64,000 nt of DNA from the sequence record NC_016571.1, one strand, 5' to 3'. Shown in pieces: positions 4,572 through 63,420 of this stretch; position 1 is the first letter of the stretch, and each line of letters opens with the position of its first letter. Below the pieces are notes generated by a model that saw nothing but the letters and a program-made list of their open reading frames with translations, ran no database searches and was not told the origin of the DNA. The translations under genes and the position numbers were made by a program.

Positions 4572-4607
4572 GGGAGAGAGGGGCTTCGGCTCCTCTCCCC
4601 TATGTTT
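4572..4607 (+). terminator. Intrinsic terminator-like hairpin (UUCG loop, TATGTTT tail)
   Basis: GGGAGAGAGGGGC-TTCG-GCTCCTCTCCCC-TATGTTT right after the stop codon. Confidence 0.8.
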
Positions 4608-4899
4608 GGAGATTGTCATGAAAGTAGTAACAATTAGTAAGGGCGAAGAGGTCCAGATTAGTTTGGCTGGAATCACTCACTTCTGGTTAAACACAATCGA
4701 AAAGGAGGACGGTTCTATTATCACCAAAGTCAAACCGGCCTACCCGTCTGAGTTTGATTCGAAGTCTCCTTTGCGTTGTAACTATAACTATGACGGCATG
4801 ACGCCCACTCTTATTTACGACTCAGAAACCAAAACGCTGAAAGCGTCCGGTTGGGGTTATACAAAAATGACTTTCACTTTTAATAAGGAAAGTTCGTGA
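4606..4899 (+). CDS. Hypothetical protein (probable start ATG 4618)
   Basis: GGAG SD precedes ATG 4618. Confidence 0.65.
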   Translation: MEIVMKVVTISKGEEVQISLAGITHFWLNTIEKEDGSIITKVKPAYPSEFDSKSPLRCNYNYDGMTPTLIYDSETKTLKASGWGYTKMTFTFNKESS

Positions 4900-5366
4900 T
4901 CAAAGAAGAACACATTAAAGCGGCTGCGGCCATTGTAGATAACTTAACTCAAAAAGGAACCACCATGTCTCATAAAGTAGCTGTAGATAACGTAGAACCA
5001 ATCATTGGCAAATCAACCTTCTATACCGTTAAGAACGGCGAAGTGACCCCAATCACTGAAGATCTGCCTTCCAACGTTATCTTTATTCTGAACTGCATCA
5101 AAGTGACCCAAGACGATAAAGAAATCGTTCTGGGCAAAGAACAAGATGGTAAACGTTTTGTTCCTTCCTTTGAACTGTCTAAGTCAGAGACAGAGTTCAT
5201 CATTAACTACTTTGCGGAGGCTACCGAAGACCAACCTGCGATCAAACTACGCGGTACCGTCGATCTGGAAACTCGCACCATTTCTATTACCGGTGAAGGG
5301 TTTGAAACTGCTGAAGTTGAAGTAGTTGAATTTGCTCAGCAGGACGCTCCAGAAGCGACTGAGTAA
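4896..5366 (+). CDS. Hypothetical acidic protein with two SD-preceded in-frame starts (4896 GTG, 4965 ATG)
   Basis: AAGGA upstream of both starts. Confidence 0.7.
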   Translation: MIKEEHIKAAAAIVDNLTQKGTTMSHKVAVDNVEPIIGKSTFYTVKNGEVTPITEDLPSNVIFILNCIKVTQDDKEIVLGKEQDGKRFVPSFELSKSETEFIINYFAEATEDQPAIKLRGTVDLETRTISITGEGFETAEVEVVEFAQQDAPEATE

Positions 5367-5373
5367 TGATGCC

Positions 5374-5400
5374 TTGGGGTAGTTAAGGCTACCCCAAAAA
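5374..5400 (+). terminator. Hairpin TTGGGGTAG-TTAAGG-CTACCCCAA
   Basis: 9-bp perfect stem after the stop codon at the end of the accessory island. Confidence 0.65.
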
Positions 5401-5488
5401 GGAAGCTGTATTTAGTTACTGAGTTCGCAATCTGATAGCCAAGTATACTTTGGGCCTGCATGTTGCCTAGGTTCCTTAGAAACTATGT

Positions 5489-7048
5489 GTGAGGTTTATA
5501 AGAATGCGCCGGACGCTAGTTATCCATAAAGGGCACTCGTATGTCCGCCTGACTGACTATAAACCTGAACTCATGCAGCAAATATTACTTCCTTTTTGCA
5601 AGAGGAATTTTTACCGAGTTCAGAAAACGCCAGTTCCTGGTGGCGGACCAAATGCCATAAAGTGGGAAGTCAGTCATGTCTTCGCTCGTTTCAATAATGA
5701 CAAGACAGAACTTCGGTTCAATGCTGAGAAACTCCCAGATCTGTTAAAGATGATGGAAGAGAATGGTTATAACAAATCTCGGATATTAATCGAAACAGAG
5801 CCAGAAATTGAAGGTGCCAATGCGGTCATCAAGCTGAAAGATCCGAAGATCAAACCTCGTAACGAATTGCAGGAAGATTACTGTCAGTTCATGCTAGGTC
5901 CAAAACCAGTTGTTGTGAATAACGCGACCACTGGCTTCGGTAAAAGCTTCATGGCTATTTGGACAGCATACATGTTACAGAAGAGAACACTGATAACCGT
6001 ACTCCCCAGATATGTTGATATTTGGGTTAAGACGATTGCAGAGTTCCTTAACGTTCACCCCACGGATATCCTGGTGGCAGATACGTTTGGTATAGAGAAA
6101 CTTCACCAGATCATGAAAGACGGTTTGGTTAACCCTTCCTTTATCATACTCCCTCTGACCAAGATTGACGTATATATTAAGCGCATGAAGGAAGATTCTT
6201 CATTGCCAGGTTTGGATGAAGTATTCACGGACTTGAACTGCGGCTATCGTATTATCGATGAAGCACACGAATCGATCTATTCGGTTTACATGTCCATGAT
6301 GTTCGGTAACCACAAGAAGACCGCTGCATTGTCAGCTACTCTCTCTGGTGACGATGACTTCGTCAATGGTATCTACAGTCAGATATTCCCTCATCACGCG
6401 TACCTTAGACCTCCTGAGTACACCAAGTACATTCACGTCATTGCATATACTCACCGCATCGATGTGAACCGATACAGAATCCAAGCAAAAGGATTCGGCG
6501 GTTATTCTCATGTGAAGTTTGAACAAGCTGTGATGAAAAGCAGTCATGTTTGGGAACAGTATTATCAGATGCTTAAAGAGGCATTTGTGACTTACTACCT
6601 GGATACATATCGAGAAGGTCAGAAGGCCATGTGGTTCTTCCAGACCGTTGAGATGTGTGACCTGTTCCTGAAACGGCTCAAGAAAGACTATCCTGATTTA
6701 GATGCGATAACATTCACGGCAGAGCAGAGTGCGAAGAAGGAAACCAAATCAGCCTATAGAGAGCACAGAGTCGTTATTACAACTCCGGGTTCCTGTGGTA
6801 CTGGTAAGGACATCCCTCAGCTCTACATCGTGTTCAGTCCTGTTTCGGTGAGTTCTTCTCAGCGTAACGACCAGATGGTTGGACGTACTCGTCCGATTGA
6901 CAAATGGTGGCCTGACCTCGATCCGATCTTCTTGTACTTCGTATGTCCTGACATTGCGAAACAAGTTGATTACCATCGGAAACGTAAACAGATCTTCGAT
7001 AAGAAAATGAAGAAGTTTACGTTGATAGACTCTGGATCGCGTATTTAA
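5489..7048 (+). CDS. Superfamily 2 (DExH-box) helicase (phiKZ gp75-like)
   Basis: Walker A TTGFGKS; Walker B IIDEAHE; motif III LSAT; motif V GTGKDIP; motif VI QMVGRTR. Confidence 0.9.
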   Translation: MRFIRMRRTLVIHKGHSYVRLTDYKPELMQQILLPFCKRNFYRVQKTPVPGGGPNAIKWEVSHVFARFNNDKTELRFNAEKLPDLLKMMEENGYNKSRILIETEPEIEGANAVIKLKDPKIKPRNELQEDYCQFMLGPKPVVVNNATTGFGKSFMAIWTAYMLQKRTLITVLPRYVDIWVKTIAEFLNVHPTDILVADTFGIEKLHQIMKDGLVNPSFIILPLTKIDVYIKRMKEDSSLPGLDEVFTDLNCGYRIIDEAHESIYSVYMSMMFGNHKKTAALSATLSGDDDFVNGIYSQIFPHHAYLRPPEYTKYIHVIAYTHRIDVNRYRIQAKGFGGYSHVKFEQAVMKSSHVWEQYYQMLKEAFVTYYLDTYREGQKAMWFFQTVEMCDLFLKRLKKDYPDLDAITFTAEQSAKKETKSAYREHRVVITTPGSCGTGKDIPQLYIVFSPVSVSSSQRNDQMVGRTRPIDKWWPDLDPIFLYFVCPDIAKQVDYHRKRKQIFDKKMKKFTLIDSGSRI

Positions 7049-7052
7049 TAAC

Positions 7053-7091
7053 TGGACCTTGGGACCTTTGGGTTCCAGGGTTCATGTCTTT
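7053..7091 (+). terminator. Terminator-like hairpin after the helicase
   Basis: CCTTGGGACC-TTTG-GGTTCCAGGG followed by TTCATGTCTTT. Confidence 0.6.
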
Positions 7092-7543
7092 TGGCGGTAA
7101 CAATGAATGTATTAAATTTAGTATCGTTTAATGTCCGTGCTCCAGAAATTGCTCAGCTAGACACGTTACAAGTTGTAGCCGCTGGCTTGAACATTTTACT
7201 GGACGGACATAAAGCATTAGGGTTGGATATGGAGGACTTCAGTTTAATGGAGAACGCCAACCTTACCATGGGTGATCATGCATCTGAACTCTGTAACGGT
7301 TCAGATGAAGACTTTGACCGAATCTATAAGAATGCCAAGAATGTGCTAAATACCGTGTTAGCAACTCAAGGTGAAGAGTTGGTTGGGTTCGCTGCTAATC
7401 TATTAAGCATCGATGACATGATGACGTTTGAGTATCCTGGTCTTATAAGACTCTGCGTGAAAGAGGGTAGCAGAAATGGAAACGCTGGAAGTAGTCTCCT
7501 TTACCTTACCAAATCCGCGTATTGTTCAGGCTATTCATACTAA
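7091..7543 (+). CDS. Hypothetical protein
   Basis: 150-aa ORF; true start probably ATG near 7103. Confidence 0.65.
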   Translation: MAVTMNVLNLVSFNVRAPEIAQLDTLQVVAAGLNILLDGHKALGLDMEDFSLMENANLTMGDHASELCNGSDEDFDRIYKNAKNVLNTVLATQGEELVGFAANLLSIDDMMTFEYPGLIRLCVKEGSRNGNAGSSLLYLTKSAYCSGYSY

Positions 7544-7880
7544 ACCTATCGTCCTCCACGAGATCGTTGTATTTGTGCTCGGCAAACAGTTGATTTTGGG
7601 ACCTACTGAAAAGTATAGTTTTGATAACCGCATGCTTGAGTACATGGTGTCTTGTTTGGATCCACTGGATAAGACATCGGTTGTTAACGGCGATGACAAT
7701 GTTACGTTAATTTACTTAGAGTTAATCGACATTATCGAAAAGATTCAGCAAGGATATGTTTATCAGTCCCTGCTGAATGGAGGAGAGGTTTACCTTAAAT
7801 ATGACTATGATATTGGAAGAAGGTTTTCGAAAATTAGGTTGTACACCGATACCTATGAATACGGGGACCCCGTTTTATAA
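7476..7880 (+). CDS. Hypothetical protein
   Basis: GAGGG SD 8 nt before ATG; 68-nt overlap with the upstream ORF. Confidence 0.65.
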   Translation: METLEVVSFTLPNPRIVQAIHTKPIVLHEIVVFVLGKQLILGPTEKYSFDNRMLEYMVSCLDPLDKTSVVNGDDNVTLIYLELIDIIEKIQQGYVYQSLLNGGEVYLKYDYDIGRRFSKIRLYTDTYEYGDPVL

Positions 7881-8505: not shown

Positions 8506-8520
8506 GACAATGAACAGTCC

Positions 8521-8550
8521 CTCCCCTACTCCTTAACCGGGGTAGGGGAG
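8521..8550 (+). terminator. Hairpin CTCCCCTACTCC-TTAACC-GGGGTAGGGGAG
   Basis: 12-bp stem with one G-U pair; member of the CTAC/GTAG hairpin family. Confidence 0.7.
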
Positions 8551-8592
8551 TGGTCTGAATACATTATTCCTTCCTAATTAAAGGAGTGCCTT

Positions 8593-9048
8593 ATGCCTGT
8601 CATTATTTATAAATGGATGACTCTAGCCAACATACCTCCTTTAAGCAAGGAGTCACCCGAGATAACGGATGTTTATGCTCACATAAAAGAAGGACTAAAG
8701 AAAGATCCTAAATTTACTGTTTGGGAAATTCCTCAATATACCTCATTCGGTGGAAGAGTGAGTTGGACCGCGTCCAACTTGAGAGTTTCCATAAAGGGCA
8801 TGATCGCATATCAAGTAGGAAAGTCTCTGCGAATGTCTACGGGGATCTTTAAGAACGGTGTACCCTCTGTTCACATCCCCACATTGACGTACTCTGAGTA
8901 CTTTCCATTGGACCGTATTATTGCCTGTACATTCCTTCCTATCCCGGAGGAGTTATCAGAATACTCCAAAAGTGAGTTAAAGGTAGGGAGAATAAATGGT
9001 CAAAAACATCAAGTTCATTTGGCTAATTTGAAGTGGATGAAACCATAG
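8593..9048 (+). CDS. Hypothetical protein
   Basis: AAGGAG SD; flanked on both sides by related hairpins. Confidence 0.75.
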   Translation: MPVIIYKWMTLANIPPLSKESPEITDVYAHIKEGLKKDPKFTVWEIPQYTSFGGRVSWTASNLRVSIKGMIAYQVGKSLRMSTGIFKNGVPSVHIPTLTYSEYFPLDRIIACTFLPIPEELSEYSKSELKVGRINGQKHQVHLANLKWMKP

Positions 9049-9051
9049 TTA

Positions 9052-9079
9052 CCTTGCTACCTCTACCGGGGTAGCAAGG
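9052..9079 (+). terminator. Hairpin CCTTGCTACCTC-TACC-GGGGTAGCAAGG
   Basis: 12-bp stem right after the stop codon. Confidence 0.7.
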
Positions 9080-9088
9080 GATAATACT

Positions 9089-9838: not shown

Positions 9839-9883
9839 CATATTCCCCTTACCCTCCGAAAGGAAGGGTAAGGGTTATGTTTG
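9837..9883. terminator. Bidirectional terminator-like hairpin (GAAA loop, bulged A)
   Basis: AACATA..CCCTTACCCTCC-GAAA-GGAAGGGTAAGGG-TTATGTTT between convergent genes. Confidence 0.8.
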
Positions 9884-12074: not shown

Positions 12075-12107
12075 AGATTTGCCTATTTACTTATAAGGGG
12101 TCATAAC

Positions 12108-12866: not shown

Positions 12867-12907
12867 TCCGTAATCCCTCAATCCACTCCTTATATAGGAA
12901 TGTAATA

Positions 12908-15506: not shown

Positions 15507-15548
15507 CCCTACTCCCTCCGCAAGGAAGGGGTAGGGGTTTATGTTTGT
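15507..15548 (+). terminator. Hairpin (GCAA loop, C.A mismatch) with TTTATGTTT tail
   Basis: CCCTACTCCCTCC-GCAA-GGAAGGGGTAGGG-GTTTATGTTTG. Confidence 0.8.
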
Positions 15549-15563
15549 CTATTCATTTTCAAA

Positions 15564-15590
15564 CAGATATTATTATAATGTATAAGTACA
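15564..15590 (+). promoter_or_regulatory. Putative early (virion RNAP) promoter, ATATTA-N6-TGTA
   Basis: CAG-ATATTA-TTATAA-TGTA. The same spacing recurs at 47736 and 54477. Resembles the TATTAC-type phiKZ early element. Confidence 0.55.
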
Positions 15591-16834: not shown

Positions 16835-16879
16835 ACATATCCCCTACCCACTCCGTCAAGGAGGGGTAGGGGTTTATGA
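16835..16879. terminator. Bidirectional hairpin; 32-bp core is the exact reverse complement of 22748..22779
   Basis: ACATAT-CCCCTACCCACTCC-GTCAA-GGAGGGGTAGGGG-TTTATG between convergent genes. Confidence 0.8.
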
Positions 16880-22740: not shown

Positions 22741-22790
22741 CATAAATCCCCTACCCCTCCTTGACGGAGTGGGTAGGGGTTATGTTTGTT
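22741..22790. terminator. Bidirectional hairpin (inverted copy of 16841..16872)
   Basis: CATAAAT-CCCCTACCCCTCC-TTGAC-GGAGTGGGTAGGGG-TTATGTTTG. Confidence 0.8.
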
Positions 22791-30610: not shown

Positions 30611-30648
30611 GGCTAGGGGTTTCGGCCCCTAGCCCTTTATGTATGTTG
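30611..30648 (+). terminator. Hairpin (UUCG) with CTTTATGTATG tail
   Basis: GGCTAGGGGT-TTCG-GCCCCTAGCC. Confidence 0.8.
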
Positions 30649-31787: not shown

Positions 31788-31825
31788 TAGGTAGAAGGGC
31801 TTCGGTCCTTCTACCTAATTTTATG
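31788..31825 (+). terminator. Hairpin (UUCG) with TTTTATG tail
   Basis: TAGGTAGAAGGGC-TTCG-GTCCTTCTACCTA. Confidence 0.85.
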
Positions 31826-32937: not shown

Positions 32938-32976
32938 AGCTAGAGTGGGGAATTCCCCACTCTAGCTTTATGTTTG
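32938..32976. terminator. Perfect 30-bp palindrome with TTATGTTT tail
   Basis: AGCTAGAGTGGGGAATTCCCCACTCTAGCT. Confidence 0.85.
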
Positions 32977-34238: not shown

Positions 34239-34249
34239 CAAACATAATC

Positions 34250-34281
34250 GGATAGGGGGCTCTCGCCTCCTATCCTTTATG
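34250..34281 (+). terminator. Hairpin with TTTATG tail
   Basis: GGATAGGGGGC-TCTC-GCCTCCTATCC-TTTATG. Confidence 0.75.
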
Positions 34282-38233: not shown

Positions 38234-38268
38234 CCTATTACTCCTTAATCGGGGTAATAGGGTTTTGA
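38234..38268 (+). terminator. Hairpin CCTATTACTCC-TTAATC-GGGGTAATAGG
   Basis: Same architecture and near-identical loop as the 8521 hairpin. Confidence 0.75.
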
Positions 38269-38301
38269 TGTTATGATTGTAATTAAGAGGGATACAACAC
38301 T

Positions 38302-43148: not shown

Positions 43149-43164
43149 AACAAATACATAACTA

Positions 43165-43194
43165 CTAGAACAGGACCGCGAGGTCCTGTTCTAG
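43165..43194. terminator. Bidirectional hairpin (GCGA loop)
   Basis: CTAGAACAGGACC-GCGA-GGTCCTGTTCTAG between convergent genes; ACATA on the left flank. Confidence 0.85.
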
Positions 43195-44787: not shown

Positions 44788-45339
44788 ATGATTTTAAGAC
44801 TTGGTGAAAATGTTGTAGATGTACTGTTCCTTAACGAACAACACCTCCACATGTTGAATTCTTTAAATATTGAACTGAAGGATTTGCCTTATCTACCTAA
44901 GTTCAATGAAGTGTCCGATCAAGATTGTCTTGATTGGCTGGGCTTCCAGCGCGCTGTCGAGAAACAATACTGTGGTTTCAAGACTACAACTTATGATTAC
45001 GCCAGTGATATTACAGTTGGTAAAATTAATCGTGAAGGCGTAGTTTATAAAACAAAATATGATGAAGTACTAAATGCAGACCGTAGTGTTAATTTAGGTT
45101 CGCACTTTGCTTATCATTTGTTCAACGGTAAACTCTTTATCTTGAGCTCCAGTAATACTGTGAATAGTAAAATGTTCACAACCGTGCAGGGGAATCTGGC
45201 CAGTTCTCTTTACCAGGCTTTACTGAACTCCTTCAGCACTTTTGAAACTTACGGCCGTGAGAGTAAAAATCTCAAGGAATCGGTAAGCCAAAGAAAGTAT
45301 ATTGATCTCGGTTTTGTGCTTTCTAAGTTAGTTAATTAA
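44788..45339 (+). CDS. Hypothetical protein upstream of the capsid gene
   Basis: 183 aa; AAAGGT SD. Confidence 0.7.
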   Translation: MILRLGENVVDVLFLNEQHLHMLNSLNIELKDLPYLPKFNEVSDQDCLDWLGFQRAVEKQYCGFKTTTYDYASDITVGKINREGVVYKTKYDEVLNADRSVNLGSHFAYHLFNGKLFILSSSNTVNSKMFTTVQGNLASSLYQALLNSFSTFETYGRESKNLKESVSQRKYIDLGFVLSKLVN

Positions 45340-45460
45340 ATAGGTGTAGAGTTACTGTTGATGCGTGTTACAGATACTTATCTATCTTATGCGTAAAAAT
45401 ATTAACTACTGCGAACAAATGCATTTGTTTTCAAAAAGACTTCTTTAAAGGTAATTTATA

Positions 45461-47620
45461 ATGGAACAAAATAACGAATTCCGTTTTGGTATCTCCAAAT
45501 CTGGCGTAGACCTGAAAGCACTGATGACTGGCGTTGTTAGCAACCAGCAGTCCGACGGTACCCTGCGTGGTCTGGTTGGCGCTGAGTCAATGACCGATGG
45601 CCTGAAAGCTATCGAGAAAGGCATGGGCTTCAACCAGAAGAACGCTATCTCTTCTCTGATCGCTGACAGCGGTAAGTTCAACAGCCGCGCTGAAGCACTG
45701 AAAGCAGTTGTAGCTCACGGTGGTATGGAATCATTCTCCATGCAGCTGGATGCTGGTAACGTTGCTCGTCAGAAAGCTGCTACCATTGAACTGAACGCCC
45801 GTTCTAACCGTCAGTGGGATGCTGCTGAAGCTCTGTACCCAACTCTGATCATTCCTTACGATCAAGAAGCTCTGGTACTGCCAATCGATATCGCTGGTGT
45901 TGGTGCTTATAACGCATCTGGTAACGCTAACGAAGCTTTCGAAGATCTGCGTCCAATCGCTTCCGTTCTGGCTGACAGCAAATTCAACGCTGGCGACGAT
46001 CTGAAACTGGTTCCAGTATTGCCTGCTAACCCAACCGACGCTAACGCTGCGATGTTCGTACCGTCTGCTGACTGGGCTCCATGGGATACTACCTATGACG
46101 CAAACGACCTGCTGGGTCGTGAAGCTCATAAAACCAACTTCCTGGCGATCCGCAAGATCAACAACCTGCTGTCCCTGTGCCGTGCTCCAGGCGCGACTGC
46201 ATTTGAGCAGAACGATGAGATCGAAGCATCTTCTATCAAACTGAACCGCATCCTGCTGAAACTGAAAACCAAAGATGGTGAAGGTTTCGTTACTCTGGAC
46301 ACAGCTTCTATGGCTGGTGTTGCAGCCCGTCCGTCTACCGGTACTACTGCTGACGAAAAACGTCAGATCAACTTCGTACTGAACGGCCTGAACGTTGCAA
46401 ACCTGAAAGACAAAGACGGCAAAGCTACCGAGCTGTTCAAGTCTCTGACTGACGCTGGTCTGAAAGTATTCCTGTCTATGGAACTGAGCGCGACTTATCA
46501 TCGTTCTACCCGTAGCTGGTCTCCAACCGTATCTCCAGTTGCAGTTGCATACGTAATCAACAAAGACGGCGACCGTCTGGTAGTTGGTCACAGCAACATG
46601 CCTGCTGATATCGCAACTCTGATCACCGATCAAGCAGTTGAAGCTTCTATCCACGGTGTGGATCTGAAGATGAACCACGCGAACACCAACCGTAGCCGTT
46701 ACGGTACTACTGTTGTTTACGCTAACACCACCAAGTCCTACAACATCCAGCGCCGTCAGCCAATCAGCGTTAAGTACCCAATGCTGAATGATGACAACAA
46801 CGCTGACGTACTGGCAATGCTGGTACAGCAGATGGACATCATGGTTACCCGTAACATGTCTCACGACGCATTCAAAGCTGCTAACCAGCACTTCGCTTAC
46901 GTTTACGACAACAACGGTATGAAGATCGTTAACATCAATGACGACTCTTCTTCTGTACTGCCAGGTCAGCACTTCCTGGGTACCGTGGGCATCGAGTCCG
47001 AGATCGACCTGATCACTGAAGTTTCCACCCTGGATTCTAAAGACACTCTGGCGAACATCGAAGCTGCTCTGGTGAACAAGGTATACGACATCATCACTGG
47101 TCTGCGTGTACGTTCTAACATCTCCGCTCTGAAAGAGCTGGATGGTCGTGAAGAAGCTTACACCATCATCGCTCACGCATCCCTGGCTCCGTTCCTGATG
47201 CGTACTGGTGACTACCGTACCTTCGGTACCAATGTTAAGTTCAAAGTACTCGAAACTAACATCGATTCCGAAGTTGGTCGTATGTGGGTCATTCCTGAGT
47301 CTCAGACTAAGAATGGCGTAGTTGATATCTTCGGCGGCATGGGTATCTGTGTAGCTAAAGAACTGCTGGTAATCGAAGGTTCTGTAAACCAGAGCGATCG
47401 TCAATACCGCATGATCATCACTCAGCCTGCATACCAGCACCACAGCCTGTGCCCAGTAGCTGGCCGTCTGACCATCAAAGACATCGATAAACTGATGGGC
47501 GACGAAGGTCTGATCGCGCTGGTCAACAAACACCTGGTTACCGTTAACGGTAAACTGGAAGGCGCTGCTGGCGGTACCGGTAAAGAAATCGAAGTTGAAA
47601 TCCCAGGCACCAACGGCTAA
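45461..47620 (+). CDS. Major capsid protein (phiKZ gp120-like)
   Basis: 719 aa; extreme codon bias; propeptide with GAES and GMES sites; AAEALYPTLII motif; follows dnaB as in phiKZ-like phages; strong terminator. Confidence 0.85.
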   Translation: MEQNNEFRFGISKSGVDLKALMTGVVSNQQSDGTLRGLVGAESMTDGLKAIEKGMGFNQKNAISSLIADSGKFNSRAEALKAVVAHGGMESFSMQLDAGNVARQKAATIELNARSNRQWDAAEALYPTLIIPYDQEALVLPIDIAGVGAYNASGNANEAFEDLRPIASVLADSKFNAGDDLKLVPVLPANPTDANAAMFVPSADWAPWDTTYDANDLLGREAHKTNFLAIRKINNLLSLCRAPGATAFEQNDEIEASSIKLNRILLKLKTKDGEGFVTLDTASMAGVAARPSTGTTADEKRQINFVLNGLNVANLKDKDGKATELFKSLTDAGLKVFLSMELSATYHRSTRSWSPTVSPVAVAYVINKDGDRLVVGHSNMPADIATLITDQAVEASIHGVDLKMNHANTNRSRYGTTVVYANTTKSYNIQRRQPISVKYPMLNDDNNADVLAMLVQQMDIMVTRNMSHDAFKAANQHFAYVYDNNGMKIVNINDDSSSVLPGQHFLGTVGIESEIDLITEVSTLDSKDTLANIEAALVNKVYDIITGLRVRSNISALKELDGREEAYTIIAHASLAPFLMRTGDYRTFGTNVKFKVLETNIDSEVGRMWVIPESQTKNGVVDIFGGMGICVAKELLVIEGSVNQSDRQYRMIITQPAYQHHSLCPVAGRLTIKDIDKLMGDEGLIALVNKHLVTVNGKLEGAAGGTGKEIEVEIPGTNG

Positions 47621-47659
47621 GCCATTGAACCTGTGAACAACAAATAAGTTACGCACTTT

Positions 47660-47700
47660 CCTCCTACCTCACCTTCGGGTGGGGTAGGGGGTTTTTGTTG
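47660..47700 (+). terminator. Intrinsic terminator after the MCP gene
   Basis: CCTCCTACCTCACC-TTCG-GGTGGGGTAGGGGG-TTTTTGTTG. Confidence 0.9.
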
Positions 47701-47733
47701 TCTATTAAAAGATGCGGCTAAAAAAGTTTAAGC

Positions 47734-47755
47734 AGATATTATCCTTATGTAAACG
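47734..47755 (+). promoter_or_regulatory. Putative early promoter, ATATTA-N6-TGTA
   Basis: CAG-ATATTA-TCCTTA-TGTA upstream of the operon containing nvRNAP beta-N. Confidence 0.5.
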
Positions 47756-47758
47756 TAT

Positions 47759-48874
47759 GTGTGTTTACAATCACAAGAGGAAATAGATGTGGGAAACGTG
47801 TCCGGTGACAACTGGCATCACGGTATCCATACTCCGGTTGTAGAAGGAATTGAATATTTCAACTATTCTGATTTCGATGTGACTATCACTGACAAGTTAG
47901 GAATAGAAATTGAGATACTTAGGTCAGAACACCGACCTGAACGTCTGGAAGATCGCGGCAAGGTAATTGCTCGTGTAACCAGATTAGCAGATCCACGCCG
48001 AGTTAACATACCGACGGTTGATGCACGTCTCGCTGTTGATCGTGAATACCTTATGCAGTTTAAGCGTAGCCTTGATCATCAGAAGACACGCATTGGTGAG
48101 TACGTACCTGAAACTACCCAGATGCGTTTAGCCATGCAAGCTGAATTACGGTTTGACTTCTACACCCCTACAACGATTGCAAAATCGAACCTCTTAGGTA
48201 TCACAGTCCGTGCCTCTTCTAACCGAGAAGCACAACAGTCTCCTGATACTCCTCTGGGATATATTCAGAGTGTTATCGGGGACGAGTTACGTGATGTAGA
48301 TGTAGAATGTGACAATGGGGTAGATAAGGGTATCCGTACTCTGTTCTCTGCCAGACTAATAGATAATACTAATCGTGTAGGTCCATTGTGGACTAGTGGA
48401 TTTGGTTCCACCTCTCGAGTAGTCCCAGTTAAAGATGAGGAGCAAATAGAAGGGCTATACTTAGCCGGTGGATTAGGATTAAAACATCAAGAGTTTATAC
48501 CAATCGATGATCTCATGGATCAAAAGAAACTAGTCTCGTTAAATCTACATCGAACGGAGCTAGATGCCAAACGTCATAGCACAGGAGAGTTCACAACCTC
48601 GGTTATTACTGAGAGAGATAAATTACGCAAAGAAAATAAAGATCTTAAGAATGACAATGGGAAGCTAACAGGAAAAGTAGAATCCCTGGAAAACAAACTA
48701 GAGATCGAAAAAGTAAATAAAGCCCATAGTGATTTTAAACAGACACGCACTATGGAGTATATAAAAGAAAACAACGTTAGCAATGTTTTAGGCGGCTTTA
48801 CCCGACTGTTCAGTACGGTAATGACCAACTTCAAAACGCTGATAGGTTTCTTGTCTGTTATTAAAGCAATGTAA
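47759..48874 (+). CDS. Hypothetical protein with C-terminal coiled coil and amphipathic tail (probable start GTG near 47789)
   Basis: GAGGA SD before GTG; heptad-like RDKLRKENKDLKNDNGKL. Confidence 0.7.
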   Translation: MCLQSQEEIDVGNVSGDNWHHGIHTPVVEGIEYFNYSDFDVTITDKLGIEIEILRSEHRPERLEDRGKVIARVTRLADPRRVNIPTVDARLAVDREYLMQFKRSLDHQKTRIGEYVPETTQMRLAMQAELRFDFYTPTTIAKSNLLGITVRASSNREAQQSPDTPLGYIQSVIGDELRDVDVECDNGVDKGIRTLFSARLIDNTNRVGPLWTSGFGSTSRVVPVKDEEQIEGLYLAGGLGLKHQEFIPIDDLMDQKKLVSLNLHRTELDAKRHSTGEFTTSVITERDKLRKENKDLKNDNGKLTGKVESLENKLEIEKVNKAHSDFKQTRTMEYIKENNVSNVLGGFTRLFSTVMTNFKTLIGFLSVIKAM

Positions 48875-48889
48875 GTTTAGGAGAGATAG

Positions 48890-50581
48890 ATGGATCCGCA
48901 ACTGCTCAAAAAGGTCAGGCGTGACCGTGGTGGCTTTACCCCAGAGCTTACAGATGGATGGCACAAGAAGGACATGGACAAAATTGCACCTCACTATGAG
49001 AAGTGCCTTGAGAACATGTTCCGATCTCTTCAGGAGAAGGGCTATTACTTTGATGGGATCGAAGAGGTTTGTCCTCTGGAATTCTACAATCAGATCACTC
49101 GATCTAGTAGTAGCGGTACCAAAGACTTTGAAATCGCTAAGAACAGTTTCTTTGGGGTTCGTATCAAGAACCACTTTAAAGATCCAGTTACTGGTGTAGA
49201 GTCAGAATTGAAATCCCCGCTGATCTTCCTGGCTTATACTAATAAGCACGGTGATCTGTATACACGTAACAGCACGTATTCACTTCAGTATGTTTTATCT
49301 GAACGTGGTCCTTCTGTTGATGGTGGTCGTGATAAAACCATCTTCATCCGTGTACTGGGATATAAGTTCAAAGTAACCAAAGAGATTCACACTTTCAACC
49401 GTGTGTTCCGTACGGGTAATAAAGTCCAAACTGGTGCGATCAATATGACGCTTCCGGCAAACCGCTTTTATAACTCCCGTAATGATCGTAAGATCACAAG
49501 TAAGAAAGTACCAATTCCATTGCTGGCTTGGTATGTGTTTGGGAAATATGGTTTTGATCATTGCATGAAGGAATTTGCTGAGTGCGATTACATGATCGAT
49601 ACCTTGGACACATTACTGTCTATCTGCCCTGAAGATGATGGGTGGCAAATCTTCTCTAACACACAGTCTATCCATCCGAAAGCGTTCGATCGTCCAAAGG
49701 GCACTCCTCTGTTAGAGGAACCGGCTATCGCGATCAAGACGCGTAATAAAGGTGGTGAAGTAAGTAACCTGGCTTTACAGTACTCTGCTGGACTGTTGTT
49801 CATGTTTGGTGTATTCAGTCATGAACTGGATATCCGTCGACTGGATGACATTAACTATTGGCGTTGGATCATCGGCCGGTGTTCTATTCGTCTCCCAGCA
49901 AAAACAGCACCTGATGTGTATCTTCGTCAAATGAACGAACACTTCAGTTCTGTTGAAGAGTATGCTGATGATATTACCATCGATAAGTATAACAAGTTCG
50001 ACATCGAAGTTAAATCGACGTATGACCTGTTAAACTACTTGATGCTCAATTACTCTGCACTGATCAAACTGTACAACCCTGCTGATATGCTCCACAAAGA
50101 GCTAGCATCAATGGAGTTCCTTCTGGACTTCCTGATTCACCAGGCGAACGACTTTAAGTTCATGATCCGTAACAAGAGTAATATCACACCGAAGATTATC
50201 AACCGTGAACTAGACGCTCATTTCCGTCTGTTCAATATGGATAAGTCGGTACGTGAAAACAATACCATCTTAGAACAAACCGGCACTGATAACCCGTTCA
50301 TTGACTATGGACTGGGGATCATTCTTCAGACTAAGTCTACGGTAAACCGTGGACCAGGTAAAAAGAAAGAAGAATTCGATCCGAACCACCCTGGCAGCGT
50401 TATTGATGCTTCCCAGCCATTTGTGTGTTCGTATCAGTATAGTACAAAACCAAACCCAGATAGTCGTGGGATGTTACAACCTCGGGTGTGTCTCGTGCAG
50501 GGTAAGTATACCTCACTCCATCCCGAGGATCGGGAGGACTACGAGGCACTAAAACATCGTCTTAAGTTTAGAGAGAGTTAA
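48890..50581 (+). CDS. rpoB: Non-virion RNA polymerase beta subunit, N-terminal part (phiKZ gp123-like)
   Basis: IFLAYTNKHGDLYTRNSTYSLQYVLSERGPSV (cf. IPLMT.[23 protein letters not shown]); DASQPFVCSYQYSTKPNPDSRG (cf. HYGRVCPIETPEGPNIG). Confidence 0.85.
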   Translation: MDPQLLKKVRRDRGGFTPELTDGWHKKDMDKIAPHYEKCLENMFRSLQEKGYYFDGIEEVCPLEFYNQITRSSSSGTKDFEIAKNSFFGVRIKNHFKDPVTGVESELKSPLIFLAYTNKHGDLYTRNSTYSLQYVLSERGPSVDGGRDKTIFIRVLGYKFKVTKEIHTFNRVFRTGNKVQTGAINMTLPANRFYNSRNDRKITSKKVPIPLLAWYVFGKYGFDHCMKEFAECDYMIDTLDTLLSICPEDDGWQIFSNTQSIHPKAFDRPKGTPLLEEPAIAIKTRNKGGEVSNLALQYSAGLLFMFGVFSHELDIRRLDDINYWRWIIGRCSIRLPAKTAPDVYLRQMNEHFSSVEEYADDITIDKYNKFDIEVKSTYDLLNYLMLNYSALIKLYNPADMLHKELASMEFLLDFLIHQANDFKFMIRNKSNITPKIINRELDAHFRLFNMDKSVRENNTILEQTGTDNPFIDYGLGIILQTKSTVNRGPGKKKEEFDPNHPGSVIDASQPFVCSYQYSTKPNPDSRGMLQPRVCLVQGKYTSLHPEDREDYEALKHRLKFRES

Positions 50582-50586
50582 AATAA

Positions 50587-53010
50587 ATGTCAGCGAACAA
50601 TGGGTCACGTGTATTAACTGGTAACCGTCAAAATCCACAACAACCAGGCGGTTTAGGAAATAATCAGCAACAAGGGAACCAGAACCAGACCGCTCAGAAT
50701 AACCCTATGGCGGGGTTGGCCGCAATGGCTCAGCGTTTGAGTGGAAATATCAACGGCCAATCTAACGGGACAAGTGGTCTCTATAACGTTGGTCCATCTC
50801 GCACTAACTTCTCTTCTCTGTTGTGTCTTGATGATACAATGGCTGAAGAACAACTGAAAGCCCAAGCTATTCAGGAAGGCGGTACATTAGCTAACCAACT
50901 TGTTATGCTCTGTGCTCGCCGTATTATCGCTAACCCGTACTTCAAAGTGTGGCGAGCTGCTTTAGAGCGCTTTAAGTCACCTAAGAAGGGAATGCCTCCA
51001 GAAGCAAACCTGGTTGAGTTCGTTAACGAAATCGACAGTAACCAGAACCTGTATAACTTTATCCTGGTTAACGCCGGTATTCAGTTGGGTTCTGTATTTG
51101 CGCAATTCATGGCAAGTGGTGATGAACGTATTCGTCAGCAACGCGATATCCTGGAACAGTGCTGGTATCAGTGTTGTGTTGATACCATTTATCTTCAGTA
51201 TTATGATTTTCTCGGTAACCATCCTGATGGTGCTCAGATTTATTATCGCTGCTCTCCATTAGTGAAAGAAGTATTGATGGAGTTGGAACCGAAGGTATTT
51301 GAATTAGCACAATCTCGTTTCACTTTTGCTGGACAGCAATGTCCATGGCGTAAAGGTCAGTTAAGTGCAATGCAACAACGCAGTGTGGTTGATAACCCAT
51401 TACTGAATGGGGTAACTAACTTCGTTGATATGGGTATGCAGGGAACTTACTTCGATCCTAACTGGAACCCGTCTACAACGGCTCCGGCTAATACGGATCA
51501 AGATGGTATGCGTAAACTGCAAGAGTATGTGCAGCGCACAGCAAACCAGGTTAAGAACGGAACCTATGGTTCTTATGTTAATAACCCGTCCATGCAAACT
51601 GAAAACTATCCACCACAGGTAACGTATGGTGATCATGATAAACCTGAGCTGTCTCTCGAGAACATTACTCGCGAGAACCGTCATCAGTATCTGATCAGCA
51701 AGTATGCGACTAATATCCCGGGTACAGATTGGTATGTAATGCCGGAGCAGTATGTCCGCTTGATTATGCCGACTATGGTCATGGATGATGGAATACCATT
51801 CCGTCTACGCGATACACGTTGCCTGGGTTGTCAGGTTATTTATCGTATTAACTGGCAGGAAGGAACATTCAACTTCCGTTTAGTGAAACACAATCTTCAG
51901 GACCTTGATATCATGTCCGCTCTGATTAGCGATCCGTCAAAGTTACTGCCGTTCATGTATGAAGAAGATGGTATTCAGAAAACTACGTTCGATCCGACCG
52001 TATATGAAACCAACAAATTCGAAAACGATGGCAAGATTTATCCTGTTGGTGAAGTGAAAGACCTGGAGAAAGAACCTGATATCCTGGTTGGTAGCAAACC
52101 AATGAAAGCAAACCTGGGTAACGAAGAGACTGTTAACCGTCTTAACGTTTACACCAAAACTTATGACCCTCAGAACAAACTGGATGCATTCGTTCTGCCA
52201 ATGGTTATGACCCGTGAATGGAAAATGGAATCCAATGTTGATATGGATCGTTTCTATTCTGATTTCGGTATGATGGTCCACGGTAACACTTATGAACTGA
52301 CAGACACTGCTCGTGTTCTTCGTGCTATCCGTGCTGCTGATTCCGAGTGTGATTCTGAGGAGTTCCGTTCTTTCGTTAAACCATATATGACCAACCTGGT
52401 AAACCGTTGGTTAGTAGAATGCCGTGGTTATGCAGAAACCCGTACAGAAGCTCAAGAAGCTAATGGACAACTGTCTTATCTGAAAGTCGGCGATATCTTT
52501 GCTGACCTCGAAGATCTGATTGAACATCTGCGTGATCAAGACCTTCCAACACTGCGTGCCTTCATGGACTACAAAACCAATACGTTTATGCGTTATGGTA
52601 TTGAAGTGCTGGTACCGCGTGAAGAAGTGAAGAAAGAGTTCGAAGAGAAGTTTTCTAAGGAAGAAGATACGATCATGCGTAATGCGTTGATCGCGACTGG
52701 TGAGACCACCATTATCATTAGTCGTAATACTGTATTCTTCAACGTTCGTAAACTGATCGGTCCTCGTACTCCTGAAGCTGTGGTATTGAAACATTCTGGT
52801 AACCCTGAGATCTTCGCTATCGTTAAGAAAGCATTGAGTGTTTCTCGTAAACACTTCAAAGATCATCCTCAGGTATTGATTAAGTTCGATACCGATGAAG
52901 GTAATAAAGTTTGGGTAGCTACTCGCTCTGACTTTGACCCGGAGAATGTATTCGTATTACGTGCCCTTGATGGTGGCGTAGATTACACTCATGCCTGGCC
53001 AATGATCTAA
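50587..53010 (+). CDS. Large hypothetical protein with Q/N/G-rich N-terminus
   Basis: 807 aa, 5 nt after nvRNAP beta-N. Confidence 0.8.
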   Translation: MSANNGSRVLTGNRQNPQQPGGLGNNQQQGNQNQTAQNNPMAGLAAMAQRLSGNINGQSNGTSGLYNVGPSRTNFSSLLCLDDTMAEEQLKAQAIQEGGTLANQLVMLCARRIIANPYFKVWRAALERFKSPKKGMPPEANLVEFVNEIDSNQNLYNFILVNAGIQLGSVFAQFMASGDERIRQQRDILEQCWYQCCVDTIYLQYYDFLGNHPDGAQIYYRCSPLVKEVLMELEPKVFELAQSRFTFAGQQCPWRKGQLSAMQQRSVVDNPLLNGVTNFVDMGMQGTYFDPNWNPSTTAPANTDQDGMRKLQEYVQRTANQVKNGTYGSYVNNPSMQTENYPPQVTYGDHDKPELSLENITRENRHQYLISKYATNIPGTDWYVMPEQYVRLIMPTMVMDDGIPFRLRDTRCLGCQVIYRINWQEGTFNFRLVKHNLQDLDIMSALISDPSKLLPFMYEEDGIQKTTFDPTVYETNKFENDGKIYPVGEVKDLEKEPDILVGSKPMKANLGNEETVNRLNVYTKTYDPQNKLDAFVLPMVMTREWKMESNVDMDRFYSDFGMMVHGNTYELTDTARVLRAIRAADSECDSEEFRSFVKPYMTNLVNRWLVECRGYAETRTEAQEANGQLSYLKVGDIFADLEDLIEHLRDQDLPTLRAFMDYKTNTFMRYGIEVLVPREEVKKEFEEKFSKEEDTIMRNALIATGETTIIISRNTVFFNVRKLIGPRTPEAVVLKHSGNPEIFAIVKKALSVSRKHFKDHPQVLIKFDTDEGNKVWVATRSDFDPENVFVLRALDGGVDYTHAWPMI

Positions 53011-54408: not shown

Positions 54409-54469
54409 AATAACCGTGGGGTATATGAGGACCTCTTATAAAGCCCCTAATTTCATTTGAAAGTAAACT

Positions 54470-54500: not shown

Positions 54501-54530
54501 CAGTATTAACTAACTTAAAAGGATTCCGCT

Positions 54531-55166: not shown

Positions 55167-55167
55167 A

Positions 55168-55212
55168 GACATAACTCCTACTCACCGTAATGGTGAGTAG
55201 GAGTATACGTTT
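55168..55212. terminator. Bidirectional hairpin
   Basis: ACATA-ACTCCTACTCACC-GTAAT-GGTGAGTAGGAGT between convergent genes. Confidence 0.85.
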
Positions 55213-55230
55213 AGTTACTTATTTTTTTTG

Positions 55231-58116: not shown

Positions 58117-58144
58117 TGACAGGGCTCTCCTTTAAGGAACCTTT

Positions 58145-60271: not shown

Positions 60272-60596
60272 GAAACAGTATTCAGATTCAGAACGTTTGG
60301 ATGTCTTAGTCAACAGGGAGGATGAACTCCTCCTTTTGTTGGATTCGAGACACGCTAAGTTTGAAAAGCAAAATCTTTCCTTTATTGATCAACACCATGT
60401 GAAGACTAACCTTAAAACTCTGAGACCTTCGGATGTTGTGAGACTTGTTCGTCATTTGGATGTGGAACTTTACTCCACCGATATTGGATCTATCAATCAA
60501 GTACCTGGCGGATATCAAATAAGTATCCGTCCCGATTGTTTGATTCATTATGGGACATTCAAAATTAAATACCGTGAATATAACGAGGATAGTTAA
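60252..60596 (+). CDS. Small putative virion protein
   Basis: C-terminal LDVEL...DI...ISI...CLIHYGTF pattern shared with 35348 and 37306. Confidence 0.55.
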   Translation: MIMERLKKQYSDSERLDVLVNREDELLLLLDSRHAKFEKQNLSFIDQHHVKTNLKTLRPSDVVRLVRHLDVELYSTDIGSINQVPGGYQISIRPDCLIHYGTFKIKYREYNEDS

Positions 60597-60599
60597 GAA

Positions 60600-61526
60600 A
60601 TGGCAGATAACGTAGACGCTGGGCGCGATTCCCAGAAACTCCCTAACCAGATCGTAACGCCGAACGGTATGGGTATTATTATCAACGCAGCCTGTGTTAC
60701 TCGACAGACGGTTGAAATTCCAAAGAACACCACTCTGAACGAACTGTACGACGTACTGGCTGATGAATCCCTGGGTCGCAAAGCTGGTAAAGATTTCCAG
60801 CTGGGTTACTACGGTATTGGTATCGGTGGTTCTCGTTGTATCGGTACAGATGCAAACGGTTTAGAAGGTCGCCGCGTTTACCAACACAAAGCAACTGACT
60901 ATAACGCATTCTACCCGATCCCGTTCATTGCTCGTAAGCTGGGCGAAGATATCGATCCCGTTCTTCGTGACAACTACCGTATGCGTGTTGTTAAGAAAGT
61001 CGGTGATGAGATGTATGTCTTCTATTACCTGAAACTGATTGACTTCACTGAATTCGACCCAACTCAAAAAGTGGGTGAACGTGATCCAGAGACAGGTAAC
61101 GAAACAGAACGTCCGTACATTCCTAAGAAGGAAGACCTGACGCCTAAGCCTTACGAACTGCAAGCTACAAACTCAGTACCAATTACCAACACCTATATTA
61201 ATGGTTCTGGTAAAATGACGCTGACTCTGAATGGCAATGACCTGGAAGAGATTCGTAACGTTTGCCGTATCCTGTTCAATGATAGCTCTAAAGCAGCAAT
61301 CAACGAAATGTACCTGGCTTATGGTATTGAAACCCGCAACGATGGCGACATCACTGGTGGCGGTACTGTTAACTATAAAGAACTGCAATCAGCTGTGGTT
61401 TCATACCTGATTACCGAAGCTTATGCTCGTGACGCTAACGCTAACAGCAAAATGCCTTGGGCGTTCTGGTACGGTAACTCATTGCCGCTGTTGGTTTCTC
61501 CTGAGACTCTGGCAGTAGCTGGCTAA
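60600..61526 (+). CDS. Virion structural protein (tail/baseplate associated)
   Basis: YYGIGIGG, FYPIPF and YYLK motifs as recalled for a conserved jumbo-phage virion protein; strong codon bias. Confidence 0.55.
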   Translation: MADNVDAGRDSQKLPNQIVTPNGMGIIINAACVTRQTVEIPKNTTLNELYDVLADESLGRKAGKDFQLGYYGIGIGGSRCIGTDANGLEGRRVYQHKATDYNAFYPIPFIARKLGEDIDPVLRDNYRMRVVKKVGDEMYVFYYLKLIDFTEFDPTQKVGERDPETGNETERPYIPKKEDLTPKPYELQATNSVPITNTYINGSGKMTLTLNGNDLEEIRNVCRILFNDSSKAAINEMYLAYGIETRNDGDITGGGTVNYKELQSAVVSYLITEAYARDANANSKMPWAFWYGNSLPLLVSPETLAVAG

Positions 61527-61544
61527 TAACAAAGGGGCTTTGAC

Positions 61545-62165
61545 GTGACAACCGTAACTGACAAGGTCCCTCCCGTTATCGTCGAGCTTTCAATAACTAA
61601 GTGGTCTTCATTCAAGGCCACTATCCCTTCCCTTATTGAGAGTCTTGGTATCGAGATTAAACCAGAAGACTATGAAGACCGTCTTGCCTTTATTGATACA
61701 GACGGTTCTTTGAAGATCACTGGCGTTAACCTCAGTACCGGTAATGTGGACTGGGTAATAAAGAACAAAGTAATAACCAATTCTTCTGAAGAATCCATTA
61801 TGCTGGATAATCCCAAAGACTTCCACTTCAAGGAAGTTATTGAGAATGTGTCCGCATTGGTAAATACCGAAGCTGAATTGAGTTTCATGAAGAACTTAAA
61901 GTTGGATGTCCGTGATGACTCTGGTCAGATTGGTAACTCAACCGCAAGACAACTCATGCAAGTATTAAACAACTACCGCATTGGGAATGGCTGGACTGCC
62001 AACCCTGGCGCTGGTTGCACAACCGCCTACTTCGTACCTCGTTACTACGGCCCTGGTGCAGATGCTCCAGATATTTATAACTTTAACCGTGATGCTCGTT
62101 TACTGGTCGTGGTGGAGTTACTGATGTATGGGGGATATAAAACCCATGCTCTAGTCGTGAGATAG
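61545..62165 (+). CDS. Putative virion structural protein
   Basis: 206 aa, GTG start, in operon. Confidence 0.55.
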   Translation: MTTVTDKVPPVIVELSITKWSSFKATIPSLIESLGIEIKPEDYEDRLAFIDTDGSLKITGVNLSTGNVDWVIKNKVITNSSEESIMLDNPKDFHFKEVIENVSALVNTEAELSFMKNLKLDVRDDSGQIGNSTARQLMQVLNNYRIGNGWTANPGAGCTTAYFVPRYYGPGADAPDIYNFNRDARLLVVVELLMYGGYKTHALVVR

Positions 62166-62169
62166 TATT

Positions 62170-62736
62170 ATGAGTGTACGCATATTAGGGATTGACCCAG
62201 GGATAAGTAACCTAGGTGCCGCAGGCTTTGAAGTCGACTGTTATGAGCGTAAGCCTTTCAAACTCATATATGCAGACACCCTTCAAGGCGATTACAATGA
62301 TTTCGGTATATCCAAGACTAACCCATTGCAGATTAAAGCATTGGGGTTGACTCGGGCATACGGCACGGTATTTGAGATCGTTGAACCTCATGCAGTTAGC
62401 TGTGAAGATAACTTCTTAGGTCCATCTCCCTCAAGTTTCAAACGACTCATTGAAATCGTTTCATTCATTCACCTGCATAATGCCAATACAGGAGATCGCG
62501 TTGGTTTTATACAAGTGCTCCCCCGGTTAGCTAAACAGATCGTTAATGCTGACTTCAGAGGGACGACCAAGGATGATGTCACCAAAGGGTTAAAAGCTTG
62601 TCCCTTCATTGATTTGAATGGGTTCGATCTCGACAAGTTAACAGAGCACGCCAACGATGCAATCCTCCTTGGCCTTTATAGCTGTGTTCAGTATTATAAA
62701 GAATTAGGATGGGATGTCTTTGATGGAAAGAATTAA
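62170..62736 (+). CDS. ruvC: RuvC-like Holliday junction resolvase
   Basis: ILGIDPG, CEDNF, K..V and HANDA catalytic pattern. Confidence 0.9.
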   Translation: MSVRILGIDPGISNLGAAGFEVDCYERKPFKLIYADTLQGDYNDFGISKTNPLQIKALGLTRAYGTVFEIVEPHAVSCEDNFLGPSPSSFKRLIEIVSFIHLHNANTGDRVGFIQVLPRLAKQIVNADFRGTTKDDVTKGLKACPFIDLNGFDLDKLTEHANDAILLGLYSCVQYYKELGWDVFDGKN

Positions 62737-63373
62737 AACTCTGACCGCTGAGACCCGTATACATCCGTGGGACAGAATCCCGATCGTGTTAAAAGCGATA
62801 TCGGGGTTCAACTCATGCTTGACTGTATCAGTCACCAGCGCAATCTTTATCTGGGGTATCCATCAGTCAGTTACTACTGGTGTTGGAACGTGGCCAGGAA
62901 TAGCCACCGCCCTGTTAATGATGATAGGTCCGATTATCATCGCATGGAACTTCGTAAACGCGAAATCCATTATAACTACAATTCTGACTCAAGATCCAGA
63001 TGGTGCTGAAGGGGACACTATCCCTAAGCAAGTTGTTGTACCCTCAGCTACTCCAATCATCACGGAGTCTGACATAGCAGTAGAACGTGAGATAGTTGGT
63101 CCTACTACAGTTATCCTACGCGCTATCGCTGGTGCATTCTCAACTCACATCATCTGCTTCTGTAGTCTGTTGTTTACTTGGACTATCCATGATGCCATGA
63201 TCAGCGGGAAACACCTTCCAAGCAACACTGAGCTGTTTATGGTTGTAGTTGGTCCGATTGTAACGTCATGGAACTTCGTACGCGCTAGCGCTACCCTGAG
63301 CACTGTAATGCAGGGTACGTCTGCTATATCGAAATGGCGTAACAAGTTATCTGGTTGGATAGCAACAAAATAA
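62714..63373 (+). CDS. Integral membrane protein with a tandem two-helix repeat (holin candidate)
   Basis: Two copies of [hydrophobic W.IH...TM...GPI..(A/S)WNFV]; basic C-terminus. Confidence 0.55.
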   Translation: MSLMERIKTLTAETRIHPWDRIPIVLKAISGFNSCLTVSVTSAIFIWGIHQSVTTGVGTWPGIATALLMMIGPIIIAWNFVNAKSIITTILTQDPDGAEGDTIPKQVVVPSATPIITESDIAVEREIVGPTTVILRAIAGAFSTHIICFCSLLFTWTIHDAMISGKHLPSNTELFMVVVGPIVTSWNFVRASATLSTVMQGTSAISKWRNKLSGWIATK

Positions 63374-63376
63374 ACA

Positions 63377-63420
63377 AACATATCCCTCTACCCCTCCGTA
63401 AGGAAGGGTAGAGGTTATGC
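63377..63420. terminator. Bidirectional hairpin (GTAA loop, C.A mismatch)
   Basis: AACATAT..CCTCTACCCCTCC-GTAA-GGAAGGGTAGAGG-TTATG. Confidence 0.8.

Follow-up and report, generated by a model that had tools for sequence, protein, structure and literature searches.

Do the hairpins that lie between the genes of Pseudomonas phage OBP, many of which are followed within a few nucleotides by the letters TATG, stop transcription, start it, or do both? The question arises from a stretch of 64,000 nucleotides, here called the window, which corresponds to bases 62,001–126,000 of the 284,757-bp OBP genome (JN627160/NC_016571; megablast of window positions 45000–53000 gave an OBP match at 100% identity). 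OBP is a phiKZ-related jumbo phage of the genus Petsuvirus, a different genus from that of phiKZ. Its genes OBP_073, OBP_074, OBP_090 and OBP_126 are annotated as RNA polymerase (RNAP) subunits, in keeping with split multisubunit phiKZ-type enzymes, one virion (vRNAP) and one non-virion (nvRNAP). An earlier reading of the window, the original prediction, had left two options for the hairpins, namely a termination signal made of a hairpin and UUAUG, or a terminator fused to a late promoter, and knew of neither having been described. We conclude that the hairpin-TATG elements are very probably phiKZ-family intrinsic, factor-independent terminators, two-sided where genes converge.

TATG Is Enriched Directly After Intergenic Hairpins

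Genes were called with a simple codon-usage open reading frame caller, whose calls within the window were in good agreement with the RefSeq table, and two hairpin catalogs were made, one by a strict stem finder and one by an RNAfold scan. The RNAfold set, covering the whole genome, consists of 70 intergenic stable GC-rich stem-loops with a free energy (ΔG) of −15 kcal/mol or below and loops of mostly 4–8 nt. Tail TATGs were counted within 10 nt of the stem in this set, and within 12 nt in the strict set and in the window list.

The window holds 19 strong intergenic hairpins (ΔG ≤ −15 kcal/mol), and in 10 of them TATG lies within 12 nt 3′ of the stem. CATA stands on the 5′ side at all six convergent junctions of the window. 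The ten hairpin-(T)TATG sites and the six ACATA/CATA sites of the original prediction were all present in the sequence where they had been placed. In the 12 nt after the intergenic hairpins of the strict set, TATG ranks first in enrichment among all 256 4-mers (45/130 flanks against a background of 4.3%, p about 1e-28) and TTAT second. The RNAfold set gave the same picture, with TATG in 36 of 88 terminator-oriented tails (41%). When the letters of each tail were permuted in 5000 trials, the mean was 6.2 and the maximum 16. The intergenic background for TATG is 3.4%, and equally strong hairpins within OBP genes carry TATG in only 1 of 90 cases. The excess thus amounts to 10–17 times background and 6 times the composition-matched shuffles. 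The genome-wide count of motifs after hairpins, which the original prediction had proposed, therefore put TATG well above both controls. Since shuffles, background and in-gene hairpins all fall far below the observed value, the pattern is real and no by-product of T-richness.

The Hairpins Lie at Gene Ends

Across the OBP genome, 19/20 convergent junctions contain a strong hairpin, compared with 50/239 co-directional and 1/20 divergent ones (convergent vs divergent, Fisher p 6e-9). The hairpins are found at the 3′ ends of genes or operons and are two-sided at convergent genes. This distribution is the one expected of terminators, not of promoters. The divergent junctions of the window, which are 25–89 nt long, had neither a hairpin nor a clear TATG promoter.

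The tails follow the same order. TATG is present in 58% of convergent flanks (22/38), in 28% of co-directional sense flanks (14/50; p 0.008 for the comparison with convergent flanks) and in 16% of co-directional antisense flanks. Eight convergent hairpins carry TATG on both sides. At predicted early-operon ends, TATG tails were fewer (4/19 vs 32/69 elsewhere), a non-significant difference (p 0.065).

The Extended Motif Matches Mapped Terminators of Related Phages

A matrix anchored on TATG has T in the preceding position in 64% of tails, followed after TATG by T (67%), T (67%), T (71%), G/T and T (69%). The extended tail consensus is (T)TATGTTTGT, of which 7 of 10 letters are U in RNA. The motif unit is longer than TATG, namely a stem plus the U-rich TTATGTTTGT, and TTAT(K)YYGT is found directly 3′ of the stem (anchored matrix TTATG-T-T-T-G/T-T). 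Many OBP terminators also have a nearly identical stem, CCCCTACCCCTCC ... GGAGGGGTAGGGG or CTCCTACTCACC ..., for example those at window positions 9846, 15507, 16841, 22748, 47660 and 63385. CATAA-stem-TTATG is a near-perfect palindrome, so the far-side CATA is the opposite-strand terminator's tail. In the co-directional hairpins of the internal-head cluster, the 5′ arm is rich in purines and forms G-T pairs. Such pairs would weaken the opposite-strand hairpin, and one-way and two-way stops may thus be distinguished.

A signal of this kind is known from phiKZ. There, 133 termination regions were mapped via ONT-cappable-seq (Putzeys et al., 2024, microLife; PMC10914365), and 61 termination sites yielded the motif 5′-BCCYCCCCHWWDGGGRRGGBYTTATKYYGT-3′, a stem-loop followed by TTAT (PMC10914365). 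The OBP elements share with it the GC-rich pyrimidine/purine stem, the short loop and the TTAT(G/T) followed by YYGT directly after the stem, as well as the location at gene ends, the bidirectional form at convergent genes and the presence of the same split multisubunit RNAPs in the phage. They differ in that the OBP stem is longer and of another sequence (CCCCTACCCCTCC vs GCCCTCCC) and the tail has one T more (TTATGTTTGT). RNA ends have been mapped in phiKZ, whereas the OBP elements are known from sequence alone.

The same motif was reported for 59 of 132 termination sites of phage 201phi2-1, and eight strong terminators of this phage were tested in reporter assays in uninfected host cells, where six were at least equal to the lambda T0 control (PMC11512511). 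We found that the published 201phi2-1 termination sites 179552, 183876, 189851 and 229201 lie 1–2 nt past hairpin-TTTATG or hairpin-TATATG, that is 7–8 nt past the stem. Compared with the positive control, two of these four terminators were better and one was equal; the fourth ranked with the weaker of the single-motif terminators (PMC11512511). The 3′ ends after hairpin-TTTATG are direct evidence, in a relative, for a hairpin+UUAUG stop signal. Motif A of 201phi2-1 (PMC11512511) resembles the OBP element in joining a hairpin to TTTATG and in being functional in reporter assays; it differs in its short GCC(N)CC stems with a TTCG loop, and some terminators of that phage join two motifs into longer stems. 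The first option is supported by the phiKZ motif match and by the four 201phi2-1 3′ ends, and it cannot be called undescribed, since both terminator motifs have been published (PMC10914365, PMC11512511). Rfam returned no family match for the whole window, and a search of public sequencing runs for OBP gave two weak DNA matches and no RNA run.

Relative to canonical bacterial intrinsic terminators, the OBP elements have in common a hairpin followed directly by a U-rich segment (7 of 10 U), and release takes place about 7–8 nt past the stem in the relatives. The symmetrical flanks and two-way action are also shared with the bidirectional A-tract/U-tract forms. The difference lies in the U-tract, which in OBP is broken at fixed positions by A and G (UUAUG). 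At least four T directly after the stem are seen in only about one tenth of tails, and TTTT falls within the first 7 nt of 6/41 co-directional and 0/26 convergent tails, so the uninterrupted U-run of the canonical form is absent as a general feature.

In the mechanism that we favor, a U-rich tract that is interrupted at fixed positions (consensus (U)UUAUGUUUGU) would come after a GC-rich stem-loop, often with the CCCCTACCCCTCC/GGAGGGGTAGGGG stem. The nascent hairpin would fold in the RNA exit channel with the polymerase on a weak rU:dA-rich hybrid, and the RNA would be released about 6–8 nt past the stem, at the G of UAUG or just past it. Where genes converge, the palindromic element would read alike on both strands and halt polymerases arriving from either direction. 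The U-G step resembles the preference of bacterial RNAP for a pyrimidine at −1 and G at +1 in pausing and in start-site choice. This preference could bring the same word to starts and stops without fused functions.

Stems and Tails Are Conserved Among Relatives

We sampled 45–50 kb each of phiKZ, 201phi2-1, Klebsiella phage N1M2 and Shewanella phage SXP01 with the same pipeline, and hairpin-TTATG tails, mostly at convergent junctions, were present in all four. Seven orthologous junctions were then aligned between OBP, N1M2, SXP01, pEt-SU and AH04. Stems are kept via compensatory and wobble changes and tails are conserved. The covariation is modest, with two double-change pairs in the capsid-gene terminator and an imprecise alignment at the OBP_118 junction.

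In the capsid-gene terminator the stem is kept through wobble and double changes, and all five phages have a TTTTTGYTGT tail without TATG. At the convergent junction at 63385, four of the five phages have TATG on either side of the stem; pEt-SU is without the left-flank TATG, and in AH04 the right copy is shifted. At the OBP_113 junction the tail alternates between TATG and TTTG among the phages. Before OBP_118, the tail TTTGATGTTATGATTGT is nearly invariant in the five phages, apart from one T-for-G in SXP01 and TA for TT at the first bases in AH04, and the stems vary. At the orthologs of window positions 43149 and 55167, several relatives have a gene ending in GCA-TAA before the convergent hairpin, so that the opposite-strand tail TTATGC overlaps the stop codon. 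This arrangement is very compact and accounts for few sites only.

Late and Early Promoters Are Probably Separate Elements

In phiKZ, the nvRNAP late promoter is TATG with +1 at the G, as the original prediction had correctly stated, and the word is necessary but not sufficient (PMC4666361). The phiKZ promoter P119L has its TATG between divergent genes; the region upstream is AT-rich and contains no hairpin.

OBP has a comparable site. The hairpin-free block CTATCTTATGCGTAAA lies on the plus strand at 45381–45396, 70 nt upstream of the start codon of the major capsid gene. It is invariant in OBP, N1M2, SXP01, pEt-SU and AH04, with no hairpin upstream, and the surrounding spacer has diverged. 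By analogy with P119L, the block is likely the nvRNAP late promoter of the capsid gene, with +1 at G 45391. Its conserved context is longer than the 4-nt phiKZ consensus, and after TATG it reads CGTAAA, unlike the terminator tail TTTGT. In the capsid-gene leader we also noted a perfect 16-bp palindrome, AACAAATGCATTTGTT (45414–45429). Four relatives carry AACAAATATATTTGTT there, a central change that preserves the palindrome. The palindrome could control capsid expression, either as an operator or as a small RNA hairpin.

The likeness of the hairpin-linked TATGs to the phiKZ late promoter (PMC4666361, PMC12809450) consists in the same four letters, in an OBP homolog of GP123, the TATG-binding subunit, and in the hairpin-free CTTATGCG block before the capsid gene. 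The homolog, OBP_126 (48890–50581), has the same position as in phiKZ, three genes past the capsid gene, and shows 22% identity to phiKZ gp123 (E 3e-14). In this BLAST alignment, the five stacking pocket residues F151, H185, H331, Y399 and Y406 of GP123 align to F, Y, H, H and F in OBP_126, which is suggestive of OBP keeping a TATG-type start signal. Promoter TATGs differ from those of the hairpins in needing neither a hairpin nor TTTGT after them, and the hairpin-linked ones peak at convergent junctions. All of the latter carry the promoter word, and only the co-directional subset lies in sense orientation upstream of a late gene. Hairpin-free TATGs upstream of OBP genes show a mild sense bias (4.8–6.1 vs 3.7 per kb), and we found no extended consensus around them. 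A word of 4 nt is too short for late promoters to be found by an upstream scan for TATG.

Early transcription offers a further comparison. T4-type PeSL cassettes consist of an early promoter and a stem-loop. Genome-wide, eight OBP terminators are similar to these in their stop-then-start order, being followed within 22–45 nt by an AT-rich early promoter (TTTYARRYAKATATTAT). The OBP arrangement differs in that the promoter is a separate AT-rich early element and not the tail TATG. The start region of the early promoter often reads TTATG(T). An OBP early promoter consensus is quoted in PMC7058600.

Alternative Explanations

Several observations weigh against the reading of the elements as terminators. 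TATG tails are not universal, since about 40% of tails carry TATG and about half are without it. The statement of the original prediction that hairpins end in TATG rather than poly-U is overstated: the other tails mostly begin with TTAT (often then C or T) or have some other T-rich sequence, and a plain T-run, such as TTTTTGTTG at 47692, 3′ of the major capsid gene, is seen in few. The classical model gives no reason for a fixed A and G within the U-tract, and some tails, e.g., TTTGATGTTATGATTGT, are conserved more strictly than a U-tract requires. At the OBP_113 junction, each of the five phages has at least one TATG between hairpin and gene, a pattern which may allow some sites to act as promoters as well. 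Finally, what is seen in OBP itself is the motif with its statistics, placement and conservation, and RNA 3′ ends at the motif are seen in its relatives only; it is from these mapped ends that we infer termination by the OBP vRNAP and nvRNAP at the hairpin tails.

The second option of the original prediction was that the tail TATG also serves the nvRNAP as a start site (+1 at the G), which at convergent junctions would yield antisense RNA. We consider this unlikely. The necessity of TATG for initiation in phiKZ (PMC4666361) speaks for it, as does the alignment of the GP123 pocket to aromatic and His residues in OBP_126 despite the low overall identity. In the window, the co-directional TATG-tailed hairpins cluster before late internal-head and virion genes, 36–93 nt from the start codons. 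The persistent TATG of the OBP_113 junction, the lower share of TATG tails at predicted early-operon terminators and, as a hint, the strict conservation of TTTGATGTTATGATTGT point the same way. Yet TATG is commonest, and on both sides, at convergent junctions, where a promoter would yield only antisense RNA, and some co-directional hairpins carry it on their antisense face as well. Divergent junctions, which do need promoters, are almost devoid of hairpins. The tail after TATG is T-rich (TTTGT), which is not the case for P119L (TATGTAGACAG) or the capsid-gene block (TATGCGTAAA), and both of these candidates have no upstream hairpin. The word itself, necessary but insufficient, is common in the genome. 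An early promoter lies within 22–36 nt of three TATG-tailed terminators, so the tail needs no promoter role there. At several internal-head junctions a second, separate TATG stands nearer to the gene, which fits a separate promoter behind the terminator. As a general explanation the fusion is thus unsupported by the convergent peak and the hairpin-free promoters, although a few co-directional sites could double as starts.

Another proposal, also improbable in our view, concerns how termination would work. The beta-like subunit pocket (phiKZ GP123, OBP_126) would also catch the non-template TATG during elongation after the hairpin, giving a sequence-specific pause in place of a long U-run, with restart at the same G at co-directional late junctions. 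The aligned pocket residues of OBP_126 and the fewer TATG tails (p 0.065) at predicted early (vRNAP) operons would agree with this. So would Bacillus phage AR9, whose nvRNAP promoter word is a different one, AACA-N6-TA (PMC5312081): here TATG was found in 0/19 tails, with TTTAT and T-runs plentiful, a contrast that is only a hint because AR9 is 27% GC. Against the proposal, the pocket has been reported to be incomplete in the transcribing complex, and the host RNAP also halts at such terminators.

It is very doubtful that the elements act in RNA processing or stability, with the hairpin shielding the 3′ end, UUAUG serving as an endonuclease site and the ends mapped in the relatives being processed ones. 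AU-rich single-stranded segments beside stable hairpins are typical RNase E-type sites, and ONT-cappable-seq 3′ ends alone do not separate termination from processing. However, 201phi2-1 terminators placed between two reporters strongly cut downstream expression in vivo (PMC11512511), and some are predicted as intrinsic by ARNold. The two-sided palindrome at convergent junctions fits termination from both sides, and 3′ ends 7–8 nt past the stem match intrinsic release.

A dispersed palindromic repeat acting at the DNA level (a mobile element, or a protein-binding or recombination site) that lies between genes by chance could account for the near-identical stems in many copies (CCCCTACCCCTCC...GGAGGGGTAGGGG and CTCCTACTCACC...), but is hardly credible given the placement tied to gene 3′ ends (95% of convergent vs 5% of divergent junctions), the orthologous copies that keep pairing through changed bases rather than sequence, and the coincidence of the relatives' copies with mapped RNA ends.

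Probable Terminators in the Window

Predicted two-way terminators with CATA and TATG on either side of the stem were found at four convergent junctions. Between OBP_089 and OBP_090, CATA (9839–9842) and TATG (9876–9879, TTATGTTTG) enclose a hairpin at 9846–9874 (ΔG −20.4). The junction of OBP_098 and the DNA polymerase gene OBP_099 has CATA at 16836–16839, the hairpin at 16841–16872 (ΔG −26.0) and TATG at 16875–16878, and that of OBP_103 and OBP_104 has the same parts at 22741–22744, 22748–22779 (ΔG −25.1) and 22781–22784. The last of these junctions has CATA at 63379–63382, a hairpin at 63385–63414 and TATG at 63416–63419. Two further convergent junctions are listed by their minus-strand tails. 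Between OBP_121 and the gene for a DnaB-like helicase, a two-way terminator has CATA at 43157–43160 (minus-strand tail TAGTTATGTATTTG) and a hairpin at 43165–43194. The terminator facing the portal gene has CATA at 55170–55173 (minus-strand tail TTATGTCTTT) and a hairpin at 55175–55203, its plus side being without TATG.

The remaining candidates lie between co-directional genes or read on the plus strand. At 4572–4600 a co-directional hairpin (ΔG −20.8) runs directly into TATG (4601–4604) and then TTTGG. The hairpin at 15507–15536 has the tail GTTTATGTTTG (TATG 15540–15543) and is followed by an early-promoter match at 15557–15573 (TTTCAAACAGATATTAT). Before the internal head protein gene OBP_110, a hairpin at 30611–30634 has the tail CTTTATGTATG (element 30611–30641), with a second TATG 67 nt before the start codon. 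OBP_111 is preceded by a hairpin at 31790–31815 with the tail TAATTTTATG (to 31825), and OBP_112 by one at 32939–32966 with the tail TTTATGTTTG (to 32972) and a second TATG 35 nt before the start codon. The hairpin before OBP_113 (34250–34275) has TTTATG on the plus side (TATG 34278–34281) and CATA at 34243–34246, which reads GATTATGTTTG on the minus strand, with both neighboring genes on the plus strand. Before OBP_118 stands a plus-strand hairpin at 38234–38261 with the tail TTTGATGTTATGATTGT (element 38234–38280). The terminator of the major capsid gene comprises a hairpin at 47660–47691, the plain T-rich tail TTTTTGTTGT without TATG and an early-promoter match at 47726–47742, all on the plus strand.

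Two other hairpins, at 8517–8555 (ΔG −26) and 9052–9079 (ΔG −20), flank the HNH endonuclease gene OBP_088 (8593–9048). Both are without a T-rich or TATG tail and may be the borders of a homing-endonuclease insertion and not terminators.

Implications for the phiKZ Family

The OBP elements are an unmapped instance of a terminator kind that has already been described, and not a new promoter switch. Of wider interest is the question why termination and late initiation signals have the word TATG in common, and this shared word is no new evidence for a switch. If the promoter pocket did act at terminators, initiation and termination would be linked in a new way; the OBP sequence data do not require such a connection. 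For OBP, the catalog provides a ready map of about 70 probable terminators, 19 of them in the window, which aids operon annotation. For the family, it means that the phiKZ terminator box reaches the distant OBP/N1M2/pEt-SU/AH04 clade, which aids the mining of compact two-way terminators.

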